64,000 bases of DNA, taken from the sequence record ON287375.1. The stretch is one strand, 5' to 3'. This document shows positions 1,960 to 63,490 of the stretch, one piece after another; the first letter of the stretch is position 1, and the number at the start of each line of letters is the position of its first letter. A model generated the notes under the pieces. That model had not been told where the DNA came from and ran no database searches. It saw only the letters and a list, made by a program, of their open reading frames with translations. The position numbers and the translations under genes are program-made.

Positions 1960-3186
1960 ATGTCTCTGAAGAACGTATTCGCTTCTATCGTTGGTCAAGA
2001 ATCTGCAGATCTGGATCCGGCACTGGCTGGCATCGTTGAAGTAACTGCTGAAGAAGCAGCAGAAGCTGTGATCGATAAAGAACTGGCTGAAGCAGACAAA
2101 TGCATCGCTGAACACGATCACGAAATCGAGAAGCATGAAGATGCTATCGAAGCTATCGAAGAAAAAGTTGAAGAACTGGAAGAAATCGTTGACGGTCTGG
2201 AATCTCAGATGTCTGGCGCTACTCCGTTCAACGCTGGTCTGTTCGCTCACCAGTACGCTCAAGGTGCTCGCATCGTAGCTAAAATGGGTGCTCCAGTTGA
2301 ACTGCACGGTGCTGAGTCCTACGCTGACGCTTCTACCGCTAACCTGAACGCCCTGGTTGGTGTTGAGTCCATGAAAGAAACTGCTGGTAAAGCTGCTGCA
2401 GCTGCGAAGAAATTCTTCGTTGAACTGTACAACGGCTTCATCGCTGTTATCACTGGTCTGTTCAACCGCTTCAAAGGCATCGAGAAGAAAGCTGCTAACG
2501 TTAAAGCTCAGGTTGCTGGCAAAGATGCTGCTGCAATCAAAGGCGAAGTTACCCGTACTGGTAACATGCGTTGGTTGGATGCTAACGGTCACGCTCCTAA
2601 AGTTGCTGACTCTATCGTTGAAGCTGGTAACACCCTGGCTGCAACCATGGACACCATCAACGCAGGTGGCGTAGTAGACGGTATCGATCGTGTTATCGAT
2701 AAACTGGCTAAGATGGGTACTAAGAAAGTAAACGGCGACGTCGTTGAAATCCACATCAATGGTGGCGTAGTTGCAATCCACGCTCCTAAAGATGATGCTG
2801 ATCTGCCTAAAGTTGCTTTCACTGTTAAAGCAGCAGCTGGCGAAGCTGGTAAAGGCGAGAAACTGGGTAAACCAGCTCTGGAAGCAATCTGTAATGAAGT
2901 TGCTAAAGACGCTAAGAAACTGCAGATCGCTAAATTCGATAGCCGTGCTCTGACCGCTTCCCGCGACAAAGCTATCGCTCAGATGGAAAAACGTGGCGCT
3001 GAGAAAGACGAAGACCGTAAAAACGTTAAGTCTGGCGTTGCAGCTATTAAGAACGGCCACCGTGCTGGTATGAAACTGATCCGTGGTGCATTCGGCCTGG
3101 GCGGTGACGTACTGGATGGTCAGCTGGCATTCGTTAAAGCTCACCTGGGTGGTTCTGCACCTAAAGAAGAAAAAGAAGAGAAGTAA
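1960..3186 (+). CDS. abundant inner-body/head protein (phiKZ gp93/gp162-like paralog family)
   Basis: 408 aa with an acidic N-terminal propeptide, three G-x-E-S sites (GLES, GAES, GVES), an Ala/Lys-rich mature part and very strong high-expression codon bias. Followed by a TTCG hairpin. Confidence 0.7.
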   Translation: MSLKNVFASIVGQESADLDPALAGIVEVTAEEAAEAVIDKELAEADKCIAEHDHEIEKHEDAIEAIEEKVEELEEIVDGLESQMSGATPFNAGLFAHQYAQGARIVAKMGAPVELHGAESYADASTANLNALVGVESMKETAGKAAAAAKKFFVELYNGFIAVITGLFNRFKGIEKKAANVKAQVAGKDAAAIKGEVTRTGNMRWLDANGHAPKVADSIVEAGNTLAATMDTINAGGVVDGIDRVIDKLAKMGTKKVNGDVVEIHINGGVVAIHAPKDDADLPKVAFTVKAAAGEAGKGEKLGKPALEAICNEVAKDAKKLQIAKFDSRALTASRDKAIAQMEKRGAEKDEDRKNVKSGVAAIKNGHRAGMKLIRGAFGLGGDVLDGQLAFVKAHLGGSAPKEEKEEK

Positions 3187-4871: not shown

Positions 4872-5476
4872 TCTATGATAACCAAGATCGGTACTTGCTT
4901 CTTAAGCAGTTGCTTGTAACGATTTGTTTAGTCGCCAAAAAGGCTAATCTAAATGTTAATGGTTCTCCACTTACACTGGAAGAACAACAAGGTAAAGTGA
5001 TCCAACTCATTACTGAGATCCAAGATAACTTTACGATCCCATATGGCTTACTCCGTGGTGGGTCGATCTACCTGTACCTCGATCCAATCTGTAATCATCT
5101 AAGTGGGTTATCTTCCGGTAAGCTTCCTACCGACTGCTGGGAAAATGATTACATCATTAAACTCGAAGACCGTGATGCATTGGCTGACTGTATCCTTCAC
5201 TATCCTCTTACTGAAGAGTATGTGCAAGAACATGCAGAAAACCTGAGAGATGGAAACTTCTATATCGATGGTCGTGAACGAGCTGGTGAACTGATAGCTA
5301 AAACTGAACAAGCACTAACTGCTATTCGTCGTTGGGCTGAAGGTCGTGAAGGTATGACTTTAGAGCAAGCTATCGTTCTTTGTAATGGTGTTGAGTTGGT
5401 GGAGTGGATCTTTAACTTTACTAACGATGTGAAAGGAGTTGAGAATGGACCAGACTCAGACATCCCTGGATGCTGA
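4868..5476 (+). CDS. hypothetical protein (virion cluster)
   Basis: Start reassigned to ATG 4868 (ATGA overlap with the previous stop); long ORF. Confidence 0.55.
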   Translation: MIYDNQDRYLLLKQLLVTICLVAKKANLNVNGSPLTLEEQQGKVIQLITEIQDNFTIPYGLLRGGSIYLYLDPICNHLSGLSSGKLPTDCWENDYIIKLEDRDALADCILHYPLTEEYVQEHAENLRDGNFYIDGRERAGELIAKTEQALTAIRRWAEGREGMTLEQAIVLCNGVELVEWIFNFTNDVKGVENGPDSDIPGC

Positions 5477-6284
5477 TTTCGATTACCTAGACTGGTGCTA
5501 TGGTGGTATGGAGTCTCTGCTCAATAATCATACTCAAGCTGACTTTAAAGCAATGATGGGTGGAGAGTCCTATTACTGCTTACATCTTGATGCTAGTAAT
5601 TATGCTGGCATGGAAGATAAGTTTGCTGATGGTATTAAGAAAGCAGCTAGAACTCTGTATGACAATATCACCAACATGCTAAAGCGTATTCGTGAATACT
5701 TCTTTGGTGACGGCGAAAAGGCCGCTGATCAAGCACAGGCTAATGCTGAAGCCACTATCGGTGCTCTGATGGAAATGCGTGGTGATACACCTATTCCTGA
5801 AGACTCTCCGGCCCGTAATCCTGATACCTACATTAAACCTTTAGAAGGTGGCGTCGAGTTTAATGAACTTAAAGATGAGAACACCGCTTTAGGTACTGCC
5901 ATCGATAAAGTTAAATCAGCAGCTATGAAAGTACGTGATGCAGCCACTGTTGCACAATTACGTAGCGTTTATACTGAGATTGGTAAAGCAGCTACTGTTG
6001 GTAACAAGGTGGTAACCGATACTTTACGTAAAACCTTAGGTGCTGCTGAACAAGCTTCTCGCAAACTTCAGAATGCTAAAATTCCTAAAGACGGGGATAC
6101 TGCAGAAGTTAAGTCAGCTATCAAAGCTGAGAATGCTGAAGTGGTTGCAGAGGCAAAAGAAGAAACCAAAAAGGCTAGACTGGTTGGCGGCGTCCGCAAT
6201 AAGTTTGTGGGTGCTTTAAATGCAATTAGCCGTACAGCTAAAGGTGTTAAAGAAAAACCAGTAGAACCAAAGTTCAAGGGTTAA
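5445..6284 (+). CDS. putative inner-head protein paralog
   Basis: AAGGAG SD 6 nt before ATG 5445. GMES and GMED sites precede an amphipathic helix; Ala/Lys-rich. Confidence 0.6.
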   Translation: MDQTQTSLDADFDYLDWCYGGMESLLNNHTQADFKAMMGGESYYCLHLDASNYAGMEDKFADGIKKAARTLYDNITNMLKRIREYFFGDGEKAADQAQANAEATIGALMEMRGDTPIPEDSPARNPDTYIKPLEGGVEFNELKDENTALGTAIDKVKSAAMKVRDAATVAQLRSVYTEIGKAATVGNKVVTDTLRKTLGAAEQASRKLQNAKIPKDGDTAEVKSAIKAENAEVVAEAKEETKKARLVGGVRNKFVGALNAISRTAKGVKEKPVEPKFKG

Positions 6285-14403: not shown

Positions 14404-16575
14404 ATGTCTCAAGAAATTTCTAAGAACTTCCATTTCATCACCTCTAAATCTGGTGCTGATCTTAAAGCCTTGATCAACGGTTTCTCCACCAACCCTTCTG
14501 CGCACACTGGCGCTAACCTGGGTCTGGAAAGCATCGTTGGTAAAGAATCCATGAGTTCTACCCTGCGTAACTTTGAAAAGTCCATGGGTTACAACCAGAA
14601 GAATGCAGTTAGCTCTGCAATCAACGGTACTCAGAACTTCAACCAGCGCGCACAACAGCTGCAGGACATGATCAAACACGGCGGTATGGAATCCTTCTCC
14701 ATGCAGTTGGATCAAGGTGCTGTTGCTCGTCAGAAAGCTGCTACCATCGACCTGAACGCCCGTTCTAACCGTCAGTGGGCTGCTGCTGAAGCTCTGTTCC
14801 CGACTCTGGTTGTTCCTTACGATCAAGAAGCTCTGGTTCTGCCAATCGACATCGCTGGTGTTGGTGCTTATAACAGCTCCGGTAACGCTAACGAAGCTTG
14901 GGAAGATCTGCGTCCTATCGCTTCCGTTCTGGCTGACTCCACCTTCAACGCTGGTGACGACCTGAAACTGGTTCCTGTACTGCCTGCTAACCCAGCTGAT
15001 GCGAACACCGCTATGTTCGTTCCTTCTGCTGATTGGGCTCCATGGGATGCTACTTATGACGCTAACGACCTGCTGGGCCGTGAAACTCATAAAACCAACT
15101 ACCTGGCCGTTCGCAAAATCAACAACTTGCTGAGCCTGTGCCGTGCACCTGGTGCTGCACCATTCGAGCAGAACGATGAAATCGAAGCTTCTTCGATCCG
15201 TCTGCAGTCCCTGCTGTTCAAAGTTAAAACCAAAGATGGTGAAGGCTTTGTAACTCTGGACACCGAAAACATGGCTGGCGTTGCTGCTCGTCCTTCTACT
15301 GGTGTTACTTCCGATGAAAAACGTCAGATCAACTTCGTTCTGAACGGCATCAACGTAACCAACCTGAAAGACAAAGACGGTAAAGCTACCGAACTGTTCA
15401 AGTCTCTGACTGACGCTGGTCTGAAAGTATTCCTGAGCTTCGAGCTGAGCGCTACTTACAGCCGTTCTACCCGTAGCTGGTCTCCAACCGTTTCTCCTGT
15501 TGCTATCGCTTACGTGATCAACAAAGACGGCGACAAACTGGTCCCAGGTACTCCAGGCATGCCAGAAGACATCACTGCTCTGATCACTGCTCAGGCACTG
15601 GAAGCTTCTATCCACGGTATCCTGCTGAAACTGAACCACGCGAACACCAACCGTAGCCGTTATGGTACTACTGTTGTTTACGCTAACACCGTTAAGTCTT
15701 ACAACATCAACCGTCGTCAACCTATCTCTGTTAAGTATCCAATGCTGAACGAAGATAACAACGCTGACGTGCTGGCAATGCTGGTACAGCAGATGGACGT
15801 AATGGTTACCCGTAACATGTCTCACGATGCATTTAAAGCGGCTAATATCCACTTTAACTACGTCTACGACAACAACGGTATGAAGATCGTTAATATCAAC
15901 GACGATTCCTCTTCCGTACTGCCTGGTCAGCACTTCCTGGGTACCACTGGTATCGAAGCGACTCTGAACCTGGTTAAAGAAGTATCTACTCTGGATAGCA
16001 AAGATACTCGTGACAACATCGAAGCAACCCTCGTCAACAAGATCTACGACGTGATCACTGCTCTGCGTGTTAACTCGAACATCTCTGCTCTGAAAGAACT
16101 GGACAACCGTCCTGAGTCTTACACCATCGTAGCTCACGCTGCACTGGCTCCGTTCCTGATGACCACCGGTGACTACCGTACCTTCGGTGAAAATGTTAAG
16201 TTCAACATCGTTGAAACTAACATCAGCTCTGAAGTAGGTCGTATGTGGATCGTTCCAACCTCCATGACTAAAGAAGGTTCTGTTGACATCTTCGGCGGTA
16301 TGGGTGTTTGTGTAGCTAAAGAACTGCTGGTTATCGAAGGCTCTGTAAACCAGGCTGATCGTCAATACCGTATGATCATCACTCAGCCTGCTTACCAGCA
16401 CCACCCACTGTGCCCAGTTGTTGGCCGCGTAACCATCGAAGACATCCAGTCTCTGCTGGGCGACGAAGGTCTGATCACTAAAGTGAACAAACACCTGGCT
16501 GAAATCAGTGGTAAGATTGCTGTTGAAGGCAAAGACGCTGGCACTGGTAAAGAAATCGCTATCGATGTACCATAA
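14404..16575 (+). CDS. major capsid protein (phiKZ gp120-like)
   Basis: 723 aa with extreme high-expression codon bias. N-terminal propeptide carries GLES/GKES/GMES sites, followed by ...AATIDLNARSNRQWAAAEALFPT...; strong downstream terminator; synteny. Confidence 0.85.
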   Translation: MSQEISKNFHFITSKSGADLKALINGFSTNPSAHTGANLGLESIVGKESMSSTLRNFEKSMGYNQKNAVSSAINGTQNFNQRAQQLQDMIKHGGMESFSMQLDQGAVARQKAATIDLNARSNRQWAAAEALFPTLVVPYDQEALVLPIDIAGVGAYNSSGNANEAWEDLRPIASVLADSTFNAGDDLKLVPVLPANPADANTAMFVPSADWAPWDATYDANDLLGRETHKTNYLAVRKINNLLSLCRAPGAAPFEQNDEIEASSIRLQSLLFKVKTKDGEGFVTLDTENMAGVAARPSTGVTSDEKRQINFVLNGINVTNLKDKDGKATELFKSLTDAGLKVFLSFELSATYSRSTRSWSPTVSPVAIAYVINKDGDKLVPGTPGMPEDITALITAQALEASIHGILLKLNHANTNRSRYGTTVVYANTVKSYNINRRQPISVKYPMLNEDNNADVLAMLVQQMDVMVTRNMSHDAFKAANIHFNYVYDNNGMKIVNINDDSSSVLPGQHFLGTTGIEATLNLVKEVSTLDSKDTRDNIEATLVNKIYDVITALRVNSNISALKELDNRPESYTIVAHAALAPFLMTTGDYRTFGENVKFNIVETNISSEVGRMWIVPTSMTKEGSVDIFGGMGVCVAKELLVIEGSVNQADRQYRMIITQPAYQHHPLCPVVGRVTIEDIQSLLGDEGLITKVNKHLAEISGKIAVEGKDAGTGKEIAIDVP

Positions 16576-16743: not shown

Positions 16744-17832
16744 GTGGCCAAAGTTAGCGGTGATAATTGGCATCACGGCTGGGACACTCCATATGTCGAA
16801 GGAATCGAGTATTTCAACTATACTGACTTTGATATTACCATCACTGATAAGTTAGGTGTAGAATGTGAAGTACTGCGATCTGATGAACGCCCAGCAAGGT
16901 TGGAGGACCGAGGGAAGGTAATCATCAGGGTAACTCGCTTAATCGATCCTAGACGTGTTAGGGTTCCAAGTACGGATGCACAACTTGCTGCAGACAGAAT
17001 GTATCTTGAATCTTTCAAGGCAGCTGTCGATCATGCAAGGGAAAATAGAATAGGGGCTTATGAATCTGAACATAATCAGATTCGAGTACCTTGTCAAGCA
17101 GAAATACGTTTAGACTTCTATCTGCAGAATACGGTTGCTAAATCCAACCTGTTGGGAATTACCATCCGTGCAACAAATAACGTTGTTGATAAATCGCATG
17201 GTAATACTCCGGAAGGATATATCAATGACGTTATAATGCAGGAATTGAAAGAAGTTGATGAGAAAGCTGATGGAGGTATTGATAAAGGTATTCGTACTTT
17301 GTTCTCTGCCAGATTAATTGATAACCATAATCGAGTTGGAACTTTATGGACCACAGGGTTCGGTGAAGTAACCAGGATTATCCCAGTAAAAGATGAGGAG
17401 CAAGCAGAAGGGCTATATTTAGCCGGTGGACTAGGATTAGAACATAAAGAATTTATTCCGATTGAAGAACTTATTCAACCTAAAAGAATGTTAGGACTGA
17501 ATATACATCGTACTGAAATAGATGCCAGGAAATTTGGCTTAGGAGAGTATACCATAACGGTTATGACCGAGAGAGACAAAATAAGAAAAGAATGTAAAGA
17601 TCTGAGAACTGAGAACAAGAAACTCGCAAGTAAAATTGATGAGCTGGAAAGTAGATCAGTTATCGATAAGATCAATAAAGCCCACAGTGATTTTAAACAC
17701 GCAGTCACTACGGAAAATCTAAAAGAAAACAACGTTAATAATGCTTTAGGTGGAATTTCGAGATTAATAAGTCTCGTGGTCACCAACATTAAAACATTCA
17801 TTAGCTTTGCTTCTTTATTAAGAGCGATGTAA
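16744..17832 (+). CDS. conserved hypothetical protein upstream of nvRNAP subunit
   Basis: GTG start with an AGAGGA SD; 362 aa with a C-terminal coiled coil and hydrophobic end. Confidence 0.6.
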   Translation: MAKVSGDNWHHGWDTPYVEGIEYFNYTDFDITITDKLGVECEVLRSDERPARLEDRGKVIIRVTRLIDPRRVRVPSTDAQLAADRMYLESFKAAVDHARENRIGAYESEHNQIRVPCQAEIRLDFYLQNTVAKSNLLGITIRATNNVVDKSHGNTPEGYINDVIMQELKEVDEKADGGIDKGIRTLFSARLIDNHNRVGTLWTTGFGEVTRIIPVKDEEQAEGLYLAGGLGLEHKEFIPIEELIQPKRMLGLNIHRTEIDARKFGLGEYTITVMTERDKIRKECKDLRTENKKLASKIDELESRSVIDKINKAHSDFKHAVTTENLKENNVNNALGGISRLISLVVTNIKTFISFASLLRAM

Positions 17833-52943: not shown

Positions 52944-52969
52944 TTTCAGGCAGATATTATCATCATGTA
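52944..52969 (+). promoter_or_regulatory. putative phage early promoter
   Basis: TTTCAGG-CAGATATTATC-ATCA-TGTA. Confidence 0.65.
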
Positions 52970-53015: not shown

Positions 53016-53825
53016 ATGAACAGTAAGACCCAGAGCAGCCTAATGAGCATATTTATCTTGCTCATGTCACTTGTATGGATCTCCACTGTTTCGACTGCAC
53101 ATGCATCTGTCGGAGCTAATCCAAACGAGTACACCACTAAAGTAGTGATGAAACGTTTTGATGGTTTGAAAGAGCATCTTTATGAAGCTTCTAAAGTAAG
53201 TGGATTCGACATGGTTGATTTAGTAGCCATATCAAGTATTGAATCTACTTTACGCCCCAATGTTAAATCGCAGTACTCTTCTGCGAATGGTGTGATGCAA
53301 TACACCCGCTCAACTTGGAAACAGGACCGTAAATTGTACGCCAAACAACTTGGTCTACCTGCTACCGTTCAAGTCACTAATCCAAGAGCTAATCTACTTA
53401 TTGGTGCAACCGCCCTATACAACGTTAAACAATTACTCATAGAAAAATCACATCTAACCGACAAGACAGTCCGTATAGGTGATCTTTATATGAGCCATTT
53501 GGTTGGTACTGGTGGAGCACTTGCTGTTATCAACTCTAATAGCAATAAACCTGTAAATCAAATACTCCGGATTACCAAGGGTAATTGGAGTATGTATTAC
53601 AAACCGAATGGCCAAGTGAGAACTGCCCGCGAATTCCGTTTGTATATGGATTATCTTGTCAAGCGTGAACGTAGCTTCTATGAGAAAGAAGTACGCCGCT
53701 TCCAGATTGCCAAAATTGCTGCACCTATCGTTAGTCCATTCGAAGACAACCTCTGGGGTAAGCAGCTAGCTCAAGCTATTGCCAACACCAGCAAGTATGT
53801 CGGATATAACGATTTAAATAGTTAA
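53016..53825 (+). CDS. lytic transglycosylase (SLT, phiKZ gp144-like catalytic domain) with N-terminal signal peptide
   Basis: ISSIES (catalytic E), SANGVMQYTRSTW and DLYMSHLVGTGGA motifs; signal-like MNSKTQSSLMSIFILLMSLVWISTVSTAHA. Confidence 0.8.
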   Translation: MNSKTQSSLMSIFILLMSLVWISTVSTAHASVGANPNEYTTKVVMKRFDGLKEHLYEASKVSGFDMVDLVAISSIESTLRPNVKSQYSSANGVMQYTRSTWKQDRKLYAKQLGLPATVQVTNPRANLLIGATALYNVKQLLIEKSHLTDKTVRIGDLYMSHLVGTGGALAVINSNSNKPVNQILRITKGNWSMYYKPNGQVRTAREFRLYMDYLVKRERSFYEKEVRRFQIAKIAAPIVSPFEDNLWGKQLAQAIANTSKYVGYNDLNS

Positions 53826-59247: not shown

Positions 59248-59310
59248 TATGAGAAGGACGTCGGGTAACACCTTCGTCCTTTATTCATTCCTTTTATAAG
59301 TGAGTTAACC

Positions 59311-61182
59311 ATGCAATTAGTTTTCTCTGTGTTTCCAGGTGGTGGTAAATCTACCATTTGTAATCGTGCCGAACAGTATGGGTTGAAACACGTTGGCGTT
59401 TCTGCTGATGGTGTTATAGATGTTCCTGCCCCTGCTGGAACTGTTCCGGTATTCGATTCTGATAGTTCCTTATTTGATAAGGAATATTTCCCAGGCAATT
59501 ATATCGAACACATTAAGGAAGTTCTCAGTAACTATCCTAATGTTGTAATCATGGTATCTAGCCATGACAACGTCCGTAAGGCAATGGCCGAAGCGGGTAT
59601 CCCGTACACTCTTGTTTATCCAGAACGTGAACTCAAGGGTGATTACCTAGAACGTTATGAGGGCCGAGGTTCTCCAGAAGCGTTTGTTAACATGATGGAC
59701 AATAAGTGGAATGATTTTATCGACTCCACTGAGTCAGATCCTTCTCAGGATCACATCGTTTTATCCGAGGGGGAATATCTCGTGGATAGAATTTCTGATC
59801 GTATTAAACAAGCTGTTGAAGCAGCAGAAGCTACCCCTGTAGCTGGTTTTGAATCTCTGACTGATCATAAGGTCAATGTTGATCCTGAAAAGAATGGGGA
59901 TGATATCAAACCTGCAGGTGGTCCTGAAGTAACTGCTGCCATCATCGAAGTTAATGCTGATGCAGACAACCCAGTGCACATCCAACCTACTCCAACTGGT
60001 GATGTGGTACTTCCTGTTATCGACATCCCAGAAGACCGTGATGATTCAATTGAAGAAACCGCAGCTTTGGAATTGGCTGAACCTGCTATTGTCGCTTCTA
60101 CTGTTGAAGACTCTGCTTTAGGTCCCCAGGATCCAGATGTAGCCGGTAATGAAGATCACATCGGTACCACTGGTCCGGTCGATGGTGGTGAACATCACCA
60201 TGATGAAGATCGTTATGATTTGATTGAAGCTAAGTTCGACATGGAAAATGATATTGACATGTTGGACAAGGTCATCATTGTTGCCAAAGATCCAGAACAA
60301 GCTGGTTTCGAAAACCTGGCTGATAATGGTGAGATGATGGTTTCTATCTCTACCGATATCAAAGATCGCTACGACATCGAAGTAGAACCTACCGTAGAAG
60401 GTATGGAAGGATTTGTCGAGACACTCAAAGATGCTTACAATAAGCTCAAAGAGAAAGTCAAAGGCATCCCATCCAAGAAGGTCAACGCTCAGATCATCAA
60501 GCATCTGGATGCTGCTGAGAAAACTTTCGATGAATATAACACCGAGAAGTGGCAGTCGGAACAGTCCTTCAAAAATGTAGGCAAGACTAAACTTCAGGCA
60601 CCTAAGGCATTCAAAGAGGTTAATAGTATTTCTGATGTAGATACTATTATCAAGATGATTACCAAACGTGCGGTGGATATCTACGATCGTCATCACAGCA
60701 ATGGCAAGTCTCGACTAACGGCTGGTCTAAAGGTCTTTAACGCATTCAAAGGGAAGCCCGCTGATACTCCTATCAGCGAAGTGGATGCGATGTTACCGAT
60801 CAAACCAGAGCTATTAACTGGTGGCTTGGTTGATTCCGGCCTTAAAGACTTCGACACCAAACTGACGCCTGTGGAACTTCCAGTTCTGACGAAAGCCAAT
60901 ATCAAAGAAGTGACTGATGTTGTCAGTTTCATTCTCAAAACCCAGACTGGTTTCATCGATAGTGAAGAATTGTATTATGATAATGCCCTGGATGATTCCT
61001 CGTTCTATGATAGCGAGTTCTGGGATAAACATTTCTTTACCAAACAAGCTAAAGAAGTTTGGAAAGCAACCGAGTATCATTCATTGATTGATCAGATGGA
61101 TCAGATTGAAGATACTTATCGTAACAAAGTTCTCAATGTTCTTCAGTTCTTGCAGCGTTGGATCCTGAGTTCGATCAAGTAA
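59311..61182 (+). CDS. fusion: N-terminal P-loop/kinase-like domain + acidic linker + inner-head paralog domain
   Basis: VFPGGGKST...FDSDSS...VSSH...RGS in the first ~155 aa; AGFES/AGNED/AGFEN/EGMEG sites; C-terminal helical head-type domain. Confidence 0.6.
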   Translation: MQLVFSVFPGGGKSTICNRAEQYGLKHVGVSADGVIDVPAPAGTVPVFDSDSSLFDKEYFPGNYIEHIKEVLSNYPNVVIMVSSHDNVRKAMAEAGIPYTLVYPERELKGDYLERYEGRGSPEAFVNMMDNKWNDFIDSTESDPSQDHIVLSEGEYLVDRISDRIKQAVEAAEATPVAGFESLTDHKVNVDPEKNGDDIKPAGGPEVTAAIIEVNADADNPVHIQPTPTGDVVLPVIDIPEDRDDSIEETAALELAEPAIVASTVEDSALGPQDPDVAGNEDHIGTTGPVDGGEHHHDEDRYDLIEAKFDMENDIDMLDKVIIVAKDPEQAGFENLADNGEMMVSISTDIKDRYDIEVEPTVEGMEGFVETLKDAYNKLKEKVKGIPSKKVNAQIIKHLDAAEKTFDEYNTEKWQSEQSFKNVGKTKLQAPKAFKEVNSISDVDTIIKMITKRAVDIYDRHHSNGKSRLTAGLKVFNAFKGKPADTPISEVDAMLPIKPELLTGGLVDSGLKDFDTKLTPVELPVLTKANIKEVTDVVSFILKTQTGFIDSEELYYDNALDDSSFYDSEFWDKHFFTKQAKEVWKATEYHSLIDQMDQIEDTYRNKVLNVLQFLQRWILSSIK

Positions 61183-62755: not shown

Positions 62756-63490
62756 ATGTTTAATCAAGCAACTATCGAACAACTGGGTTTCTATGTTTAC
62801 TCTCTGACTGATCCACGTACCAATAAAGTTTTCTACATTGGTAAGGGTTGTGGTCAACGTATCTTTATGCATGTTCAAGATGCACTTAAAGATTCTCGTA
62901 AATCTGACAAGCTCGATCTGATTCGTGAAATTCACGCTGCCGGCCTGGAAGTGGAACATTGTGTTATTCGTCATGGCATGTCTGAAGAATCTGCTTTTGA
63001 AGTAGAAGCGGCTATGATTGATTTCCATCCAGAACTTACCAATGCAGTAAAAGGTCATGGTGTATACCGTGGTCCTCAATCAGCTCAAGAGCTGGATATC
63101 AAATATGCCGCTGAAGAAGCAAACCTTGATGGCGTTAAGGTAATGATTATCAAGATCAATAAAAGCTTCGGTAAGCTTAGCACATGGGACGCTACGCGAT
63201 TCTCTTGGGTGGTCAACCCAACTATTGCAATGCAAGCTGATATCGTCTTAGGTGTCGCTAACGGCATTATCCGTGGTGTATATGTACCTGAGAAATGGGT
63301 CAAGTCCATTGAAGAGGAAGAACCAGAACTCTTCCGTTATCATAATGTTACTCAGAAGAATCAAGAAAACCGTAAAGTACTTGTTGGCCATGAAGCTCCA
63401 GCAGAAATGCAGGAACGTTTCCTGAACAAACAGATCCCAGCAAAATACTCTATGAAAGGTTCAATGAACTCATTCCGTTATAACTTCTAA
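62756..63490 (+). CDS. LEM-3-like GIY-YIG nuclease domain protein
   Basis: FYVYSLTDP...FYIGKG...R..H...K...IREI...E..A..VEAAMID...LTN...GH, the bacterial LEM-3-type GIY-YIG pattern. Confidence 0.8.
   Translation: MFNQATIEQLGFYVYSLTDPRTNKVFYIGKGCGQRIFMHVQDALKDSRKSDKLDLIREIHAAGLEVEHCVIRHGMSEESAFEVEAAMIDFHPELTNAVKGHGVYRGPQSAQELDIKYAAEEANLDGVKVMIIKINKSFGKLSTWDATRFSWVVNPTIAMQADIVLGVANGIIRGVYVPEKWVKSIEEEEPELFRYHNVTQKNQENRKVLVGHEAPAEMQERFLNKQIPAKYSMKGSMNSFRYNF

Follow-up and report, generated by a model that had tools for sequence, protein, structure and literature searches.

YUBABA_00490 is an open reading frame (ORF), annotated as hypothetical, of Serratia phage vB_SmaM-Yubaba, a jumbo phage of the genus Petsuvirus within the OBP group of phiKZ-like phages. 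It joins an N-terminal P-loop kinase domain to a helical C-terminal domain through an acidic spacer bearing conserved G-x-E motifs. The odds that it is a polyprotein, incorporated into the prohead and cleaved inside it by a protease of the phiKZ gp175 type, we regard as even. The architecture suggests loading of the kinase into the capsid; beyond this, we infer entry into the prohead, the cleavage, the substrate of the kinase and its final place. The window analysed here comprises 64,000 nucleotides and is identical to the first 64 kb of the Yubaba genome (ON287375.1, 255,663 bp). A first-pass annotation of the window, made from the letters alone, had interpreted the kinase-like domain as the propeptide of an inner-head protein: the kinase fold, the conserved fusion with its sites and the presence of a protease gene in the genome agree with that interpretation, whereas the sequence paralogy it assumed between the C domain and other head proteins of the window could not be upheld.

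The phiKZ-like giants load their heads with dozens of proteins, many of which they eject; the field has yet to explain the selection of these proteins for packaging and the function of the very long propeptides (PMC5694885, PMC10052503). The YUBABA_00490 family offers a clean test case, combining a recognisable enzyme and three sharply conserved candidate cut sites with variants that possess or lack the enzyme. Its parts are listed below in window coordinates and amino acids (aa); a slash within a sequence marks the candidate cut, E is the expectation value, and pLDDT is the predicted local distance difference test score of the AlphaFold2 (AF2) models.

59311..61182, + strand: YUBABA_00490, whole ORF of 623 aa (kinase, acidic spacer and helical C domain)
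59311..59853, + strand: P-loop kinase domain, aa 1-181, fold aa 1-174, ending at conserved site 1 (phrog_4182, E 4e-53; AF2 pLDDT 89; supported by fold matches)
59332..59355, + strand: Walker A motif (P-loop) FPGGGKST, aa 8-15; F8, P9, G10, G12 and K13 invariant, stand-alone homologs included
59845..59853, + strand: site 1, G179-F-E181 (VAGFE/SLTD), directly after the kinase; consensus A.I.G.E/SIGD, in about 36 of 41 homologs
59854..60312, + strand: acidic spacer, aa 182-334, disordered to about residue 299, with one predicted helix (301-326); length variable in homologs
60304..60312, + strand: site 2, G332-F-E334, followed by NLAD; consensus AG.E/..D; G332 and E334 invariant in the 30-sequence alignment
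60313..60408, + strand: 32-aa module between sites 2 and 3, aa 335-366, with a helix (341-354), invariant Y354 and VEPT..G.E
60400..60408, + strand: site 3, G364-M-E366, followed by GFVETLK; G364, E366 and F368 invariant; in 41 of 41 homologs
60409..61179, + strand: helical C domain, aa 367-623, predicted mature product of 29.4 kDa; 251-267 aa in full-length homologs

An ancient fusion of two domains

The single continuous ORF reported by the first-pass annotation is indeed open over all its 623 codons, and every string quoted there is found in the translation: VFPGGGKST (aa 7-15), FDSDSS (48-53), VSSH (82-85), YLERYEGRGS (112-121) and GMEGFVETLKDAYNKLKEK (364-382). Some phages carry the kinase and the C domain as separate genes, and from this alone stems the idea that a kinase gene and a downstream head-protein gene were joined here by a sequencing or assembly artefact; we found nothing in its favour. 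Logan contigs from three independent DNA studies cover YUBABA_00490 with substitutions only and zero indels. The same open frame occurs in phage Sureiya (99% identity) and in Klebsiella phage N1M2 (71.5%), and a word-based search recovered the same order of parts in 40 homologous, independently assembled clusters of 499-993 aa, including OBP_161 and pEt-SU_097, which also answers the question, raised in that annotation, of whether orthologs share the fusion. Searches with tblastn added AH04, where the protein is labelled 'kinase', and Kc263, where it is labelled 'polynucleotide kinase'. An error in the sequence or its assembly is thereby excluded as the origin of the long ORF, and we assign the artefact a negligible chance. 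No conserved internal start was found in YUBABA_00490, and the methionines near sites 2 and 3 differ among homologs. Judged from these comparisons, the fusion is ancient and conserved.

The N-terminal domain is a P-loop kinase

The model of the N-terminal domain has the three-layer α/β fold with a parallel sheet and a lid helix, and we confidently assign it a P-loop kinase fold. The domain had been described as similar to nucleoside monophosphate (NMP) kinases and about 155 aa long; the P-loop fold holds, but the module with its last helix reaches approximately residue 174. The predicted free kinase product (aa 1-181) has a mass of 20.0 kDa and an isoelectric point of 4.5. YUBABA_00490 matches the Walker A pattern [AG]-x4-G-K-[ST], in which G10, G12 and K13 never vary among homologs and S14 and T15 hardly do. 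The valine at the first position had cast doubt on activity. This doubt is minor: the position holds A, V, C, G or T across homologs and, since it varies so freely, the valine of Yubaba is no argument against activity.

Members of phrog_4182 also exist as stand-alone kinases of 135-170 aa in about 250 phage records, among them T4-like Acinetobacter phages, T5-like Salmonella phages, AR9, Lu11 and GAP32. Fused and stand-alone members share the invariant residues D49, D51 and S52, which follow strand 2, as well as S83, H85 and R89 and the lid residues R115, R119, G120 and S121. According to the sequence comparison, the candidate catalytic residues K13, D49, D51, R115 and R119 are thus kept in both forms. 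The N domain of YUBABA_00490 corresponds to a full-length member of the family. Stand-alone proteins such as those of Acinetobacter phage 133, T5-like EPS7 and AR9 (g174) end right after the kinase fold, whereas the spacer and the C domain occur only in OBP-like and related jumbo phages. The AR9 gene g174 lies within an annotated early operon and bears no mark as a virion protein. Whatever the fate of the fused form, the phrog_4182 kinases are widespread in large phages, uncharacterised and recurrently located beside ligases.

The structural ranking placed CthPnk first or second, yet no more than 1 Z unit separated it from hCINAP, GMP kinase and adenylate kinase. As the scores were tied among polynucleotide kinases, NMP kinases, hCINAP and shikimate kinase, they establish only the fold class of the kinase. 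The Pfam search gave no match above the cut-off in the kinase region, and a PDB profile search with the kinase returned E-values of 0.06 or weaker. The D-S-D motif is nearer to that of shikimate/gluconate kinases. Together with the end-repair genes nearby, the structural ranking leads us to the tentative assignment, to which we give slightly less than an even chance, of a polynucleotide 5'-OH kinase of the end-healing kind. An NAD-dependent DNA ligase resides in the block of the kinase gene in Yubaba, OBP and AH04, and the genes near other kinases of the family include RNA ligase 2 (Acinetobacter phage 133) and RNA 2'-phosphotransferase (PaBG); the association with end sealing expected of a polynucleotide kinase is therefore seen in the gene context. 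Compared with the polynucleotide 5'-kinases of Clostridium thermocellum (Pnk, 4gp6) and T4 (Pnk, 1ly1), the fungal Trl1 kinase and PNKP, YUBABA_00490 lacks a phosphatase domain.

In PaBG_00151 (292 aa; L019:3060-3938) the kinase domain forms the C-terminal half. This gene is located between genes for a RecB/Cas4-type exonuclease and the RNA 2'-phosphotransferase, possibly an RNA/DNA end-repair cluster.

Among the matches we rejected are the sub-threshold Pfam hits of YUBABA_00490, namely BROMI_N (20.7 bits against a cut-off of 25), AAA_17 and the Protein A B domain. The last came up again among the PDB profiles (E 1e-8, against repeated B domains); we judge it spurious, reflecting a short FI.S...DPSQ likeness within one kinase helix. 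That helix (aa 132-164, window positions 59704-59802, KWNDFIDS.E.DPSQ) is a trap for automatic annotation through its B-domain matches.

Conserved G-x-E sites in a variable acidic spacer

Residues 175-299 are predicted to be disordered, with a pLDDT of about 30. The spacer (182-334) consists of 26% D+E, 5% K+R and 8.5% P and carries a net charge of -32. Sites 1 and 3 lie between 149 and 409 residues apart in homologs, always with an acidic stretch between them; conserved islands within the spacer are T..IVDVNA and DR.DLIEA..DM.NDID.LE.V, the latter corresponding to the helix 301-326. The first-pass annotation had recognised a linker rich in D, E and P with four G-x-E sites. Its acidic nature stands, but the count does not: six G-x-E motifs lie between the domains (E181, E206, E281, E294, E334 and E366), out of which E181, E334 and E366 are conserved in the family and the other three, all in the spacer, are not.

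Conservation between the domains was assessed in an alignment of 30 sequences with 32-78% identity to the query. Over the 226 residues between positions 175 and 400, only D314, G332, E334, Y354, G364, E366 and F368 are invariant, and four of these seven columns are the P3 and P1 positions of two G-x-E motifs. The middle residue of each motif varies (F, L, M, N, V, I, T or S), and the family form of site 3 reads VEPTLAGME/GFLD.LK. An invariant G and E around a free P2 residue is, as far as an alignment can tell, what a motif recognised by a protease through P3 and P1 should look like, and the pattern of substitutions indicates that the inter-domain sites are under strong selection.

Within the kinase, the S/A-x-E motifs are limited to SPE123, STE141, AVE170 and AAE173. 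As all four fall within the fold as modelled and stand-alone kinases conserve SPE123 to the same degree, internal cutting is unlikely and the kinase should stay intact.

The motif is shared with capsid and head proteins, and the phage encodes a gp175 homolog

The head proteases of phiKZ, 201phi2-1 and SPN3US cut after S/A/G-X-E, S/A/G/T-X-E and A-X-E, respectively; in the phiKZ-like phages, multiple cuts strip N-terminal regions of up to 254 residues from the head proteins, and the protease trims its own C-terminus (PMC5694885, PMC10052503). A search with phiKZ gp175 identified a homolog in Yubaba (36% identity, E 4e-28), annotated as prohead core protein protease, outside the window:

158626-159504 of the Yubaba genome (L012:1468-2346; start also given as 158656): prohead protease homolog

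The Pfam profile Peptidase_S77 did not detect the Yubaba protease, whereas the gp175 query did. YUBABA_00490 thus combines conserved S/A/G-X-E sites at E181, E334 and E366 with a protease gene in the same genome, as would be expected of a substrate of a gp175-type protease. The Yubaba protease itself contains VGGME/AL about 30 residues before its C-terminus, which fits the C-terminal self-cleavage described for phiKZ gp175 and SPN3US gp245.

Across the 52 proteins of the window, G-x-E stands before S or N at 21 places, with about 10 expected; YUBABA_00490 has two of these. The others cluster within the first 100 residues of the major capsid protein, towards the N-terminus of the phrog_5750 internal head protein (four sites), and in three further head-block proteins and a virion protein of the portal region. 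In the major capsid protein (window 14404-16575), GLE42/S, GKE48/S and GME96/S in the first 96 residues look like maturation sites. The protein encoded at 5445-6284 carries GME23, GGE41 and GME57 and falls in the run corresponding to OBP_114-117, which lacks virion labels in the OBP record. Head-block proteins of this type, rich in N-terminal G-x-E and without virion labels, are candidate scaffold or core proteins that would be lost when the head matures. Publications on N1M2, ZPAH34, AerS_266 and SXP01 contained no virion proteome, and the papers searched yielded no proteome of Yubaba or a close relative.

The C domain and its kinase-less relatives

The C domain is mainly helical, and the full-length model exceeds a pLDDT of 90 in nearly every ten-residue block from residue 400. 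A tblastn search with this domain found 29 phage records, jumbo phages without exception; the blank result of the word-based search with the C domain alone reflects that method, since tblastn does find these records. No Pfam or PHROG family covers the C domain, and PF12699 (phiKZ_IP) gave no match to YUBABA_00490 at an E-value of 1 or better. The match to phrog_5750 was local (residues 361-384, E 0.019, in two of 30 members) and not significant over the domain.

The C domain had been said to start like other head paralogs. The domain had no significant relative among the phage's own proteins by BLAST, by a search of the whole genome or by hhalign, run in two rounds with the family profile against every protein of the window and with orthologs from OBP and phiKZ included; the best hhalign results against window head proteins (959-1921 and 1960-3186) had a probability of 3-4%, and the C domain is not demonstrably their sequence paralog. 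What remains of the earlier statement is the cleavage-site motif and the next helix: the head proteins open with a similar helix after their last site, for example TVEGCE/SLLGDAYGKVKEAG in 959-1921 beside TVEGME/GFVETLKDAYNKLKEK in YUBABA_00490, at the level of the motif only (BLAST E 0.5).

The model of the C domain resembles phiKZ gp86, a modest fold match for a helical protein, and hhalign detected no sequence homology between the two (0.3% probability). In phiKZ, gp86 belongs to the inner vertex-binding complex; it is elongated and helical, and gp175 removes its N-terminal part (PMC11297242). Unlike in YUBABA_00490, the N-terminal part of gp86 (PDB 8y6v chain G, minor capsid protein) contains no enzyme domain. 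In a library of viral models, most matches beyond the family's own members go by the name of virion structural protein or internal head protein; they come from 201phi2-1, Psa21, Noxifer, PhiEaH1 and Phabio, with E-values of 1e-7 to 1e-4 but low TM-scores. The nearest cluster in the ESM Atlas carries PF12699 (phiKZ internal head protein) in 12% of its members, and its match score is to be taken as a lead only. Several weak lines, none of them proof, thus agree, and the predicted structure points, with modest strength, to phiKZ-type head proteins.

Homologs without the kinase are found in ZPAH34 (329 aa, likewise positioned after RNase HI), PS2 (PS2_0153, 339 aa, with a separate kinase gene 7.5 kb upstream, right after the ligase), Aeromonas phage ACP1 (ACP1_0058, 327 aa; L016:6887-7867) and OBP (OBP_162, 423 aa; L004:6444-7712), where the gene adjoins OBP_161. 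In all four, a short extension at the N-terminus retains sites 2 and 3 along with the 32-aa module between them, and the proteins look like ordinary propeptide-bearing head proteins. ACP1_0058 resides in a head-gene module, between the gene for the virion RNA polymerase (vRNAP) beta subunit and the genes for gp177, gp176 and the prohead protease. Yubaba has the same vRNAP/prohead-protease module with no ACP1_0058-like gene in it.

In OBP_162 the module G-x-E ... YG..VEPTL.G.E occurs twice in tandem within the N-terminal 165 residues, which suggests that the module functions as a unit in targeting or in docking of the protease. The duplicated 32 residues between sites 2 and 3 could be the element responsible.

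A possible route into the prohead

If YUBABA_00490 is a polyprotein, the precursor would be incorporated into the prohead and then cut after E181, E334 and E366, perhaps also at further spacer sites. The predicted products are the free 20-kDa kinase, acidic spacer fragments, a 32-residue peptide and the 29.4-kDa helical protein. The C domain would stay as a minor inner capsid or inner-head protein, as phiKZ gp86 does, and the acidic fragments would leave the head, while the kinase would be freed, presumably intact, inside the shell. That an active 5'-OH polynucleotide kinase would be freed in the head, ejected with the DNA and delivered to the next host is a narrower case of the polyprotein proposal, and this narrower case we consider unlikely; it would place an end-healing enzyme in the next host ahead of any phage gene expression. 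More generally, a polyprotein of this kind would mean that a folded enzyme can enter the capsid upstream of a cleavage site. These phages would then possess a portable targeting module, and the kinase would be added to the pre-packaged enzymes of takeover and repair. Should the proposal fail, the G-x-E islands would need another explanation.

Several observations weigh against a place in the head. YUBABA_00490 sits in a ligase/RNase H block of DNA metabolism, not in the head block, and the order of ligase ... RNase HI followed by the YUBABA_00490 homolog is conserved in Yubaba, OBP, AH04, ZPAH34 and PS2; in PS1 and PS2, the kinase gene begins directly after the stop codon of the NAD-dependent DNA ligase. 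The 52.9-62.7 kb block that contains YUBABA_00490 opens with an early-type promoter motif at 52948, upstream of the gene; since almost all genes there have hairpins on either side, the sequence does not assign YUBABA_00490 to an expression class. The OBP record labels many proteins 'putative virion structural protein', a term said to denote detection by mass spectrometry, but OBP_161 and OBP_162 are 'hypothetical', and this points against their abundant presence in virions. Since some head-block proteins with G-x-E sites (OBP_114-117) are likewise unlabelled, low-copy or removed proteins may have been missed. Such a setting, in which the stand-alone kinases are also early, non-virion genes, would suit a non-virion two-domain enzyme of nucleic-acid repair working with the ligase and RNase HI in the infected cell or the phage nucleus. 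The C domain would then be an accessory, localisation or oligomerisation module, and the G-x-E islands structural or binding motifs that are never cut. We regard this as possible, though clearly short of probable. It leaves unexplained why G and E are invariant around a free middle residue in an otherwise hypervariable acidic spacer, why the same motif recurs at the N-termini of the capsid and head proteins, and why the sites persist in the short N-terminal extension of paralogs that lack the kinase. Neither does it account for the location of ACP1_0058 within the protease/vRNAP module or for phiKZ-type head proteins as the nearest folds of the C domain.

The protein could also enter the prohead and be cut there with the kinase as a mere passenger, expelled or degraded at maturation, so that no enzyme would be delivered. 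The fusion would then have united two neighbouring genes, and the kinase would serve as the bulk of a long propeptide or act only before or during assembly. PS2 has separate genes for the kinase and the C domain within one block, and ZPAH34 lacks the kinase, which makes the fusion a lineage-specific rearrangement. The propeptides of giant-phage head proteins are generally absent from mature heads (PMC10052503), and the virion annotation of OBP does not include gp161. Against a passenger speaks the conservation of the catalytic residues, which is as high in fused as in stand-alone kinases across fusions down to 32% whole-protein identity and argues, at the level of the alignment, for selection on kinase activity. 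A folded 20-kDa domain with no conserved exposed internal cut site would, moreover, have no obvious exit from a closed shell. We judge the passenger role to be quite improbable.

Comparison with known systems

Enzymes loaded into heads (T4 Alt and the virion RNA polymerases of phiKZ-like phages), long propeptides cut several times and two-part precursors have all been described before. In the literature searched, we found no description of a globular enzyme located upstream of the maturation sites of a head protein. T4 Alt, which is an enzyme, and the internal proteins IPI-III are loaded into the prohead, trimmed by the protease after glutamate and injected with the DNA (PMC5694885). The T4 targeting peptide is an N-terminal tag of 10-20 residues and the cargo the C-terminal mature part; YUBABA_00490 shows the reverse arrangement, with the enzyme ahead of the cut sites, where it belongs to what would be a 'propeptide' of 366 residues. 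The head protease of phiKZ splits the precursors gp93 and gp162 into N-terminal and C-terminal helical pieces that are both thought to be functional (PMC11297242). Their N-terminal pieces are extended capsid-binding fibres, whereas that of YUBABA_00490 is a globular enzyme.

In encapsulin systems, cargo enzymes are fused to the shell protein. As proposed for YUBABA_00490, a covalent fusion to a shell-associated protein there brings an enzyme inside an HK97-fold shell, although encapsulins have no protease release step and belong to another biological context. In the phiKZ record (207063-212767), gp199 (RNase H) and gp203 (DEAD/DEAH helicase) are marked as structural, further cases of enzymes reported from virions of this phage group.

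Expression signals around YUBABA_00490

16687-16700, 52948-52961 and 62690-62703: motif AGGCAGATATTATC, two exact copies and one with a single mismatch
59254..59281, + strand: terminator-like hairpin between the RNase HI gene and YUBABA_00490
61198..61229, + strand: terminator-like hairpin with a 14 bp stem just past the YUBABA_00490 stop codon

Each copy of AGGCAGATATTATC precedes a gene, the first that at 16744, the second that at 53016 (lytic transglycosylase) and the third that at 62756 (GIY-YIG-like endonuclease), and the motif is probably an early promoter of this phage group. With three mismatches allowed, its count is no more than expected by chance, and only the three copies matter. 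No late-promoter motif could be defined, and the RNA run X15 yielded a single contig of 186 bases that is uninformative on transcription. Between 56900 and 62800 the window contains 16 terminator-like hairpins against 3.4 expected, flanking almost every gene of the ligase/RNase H block.

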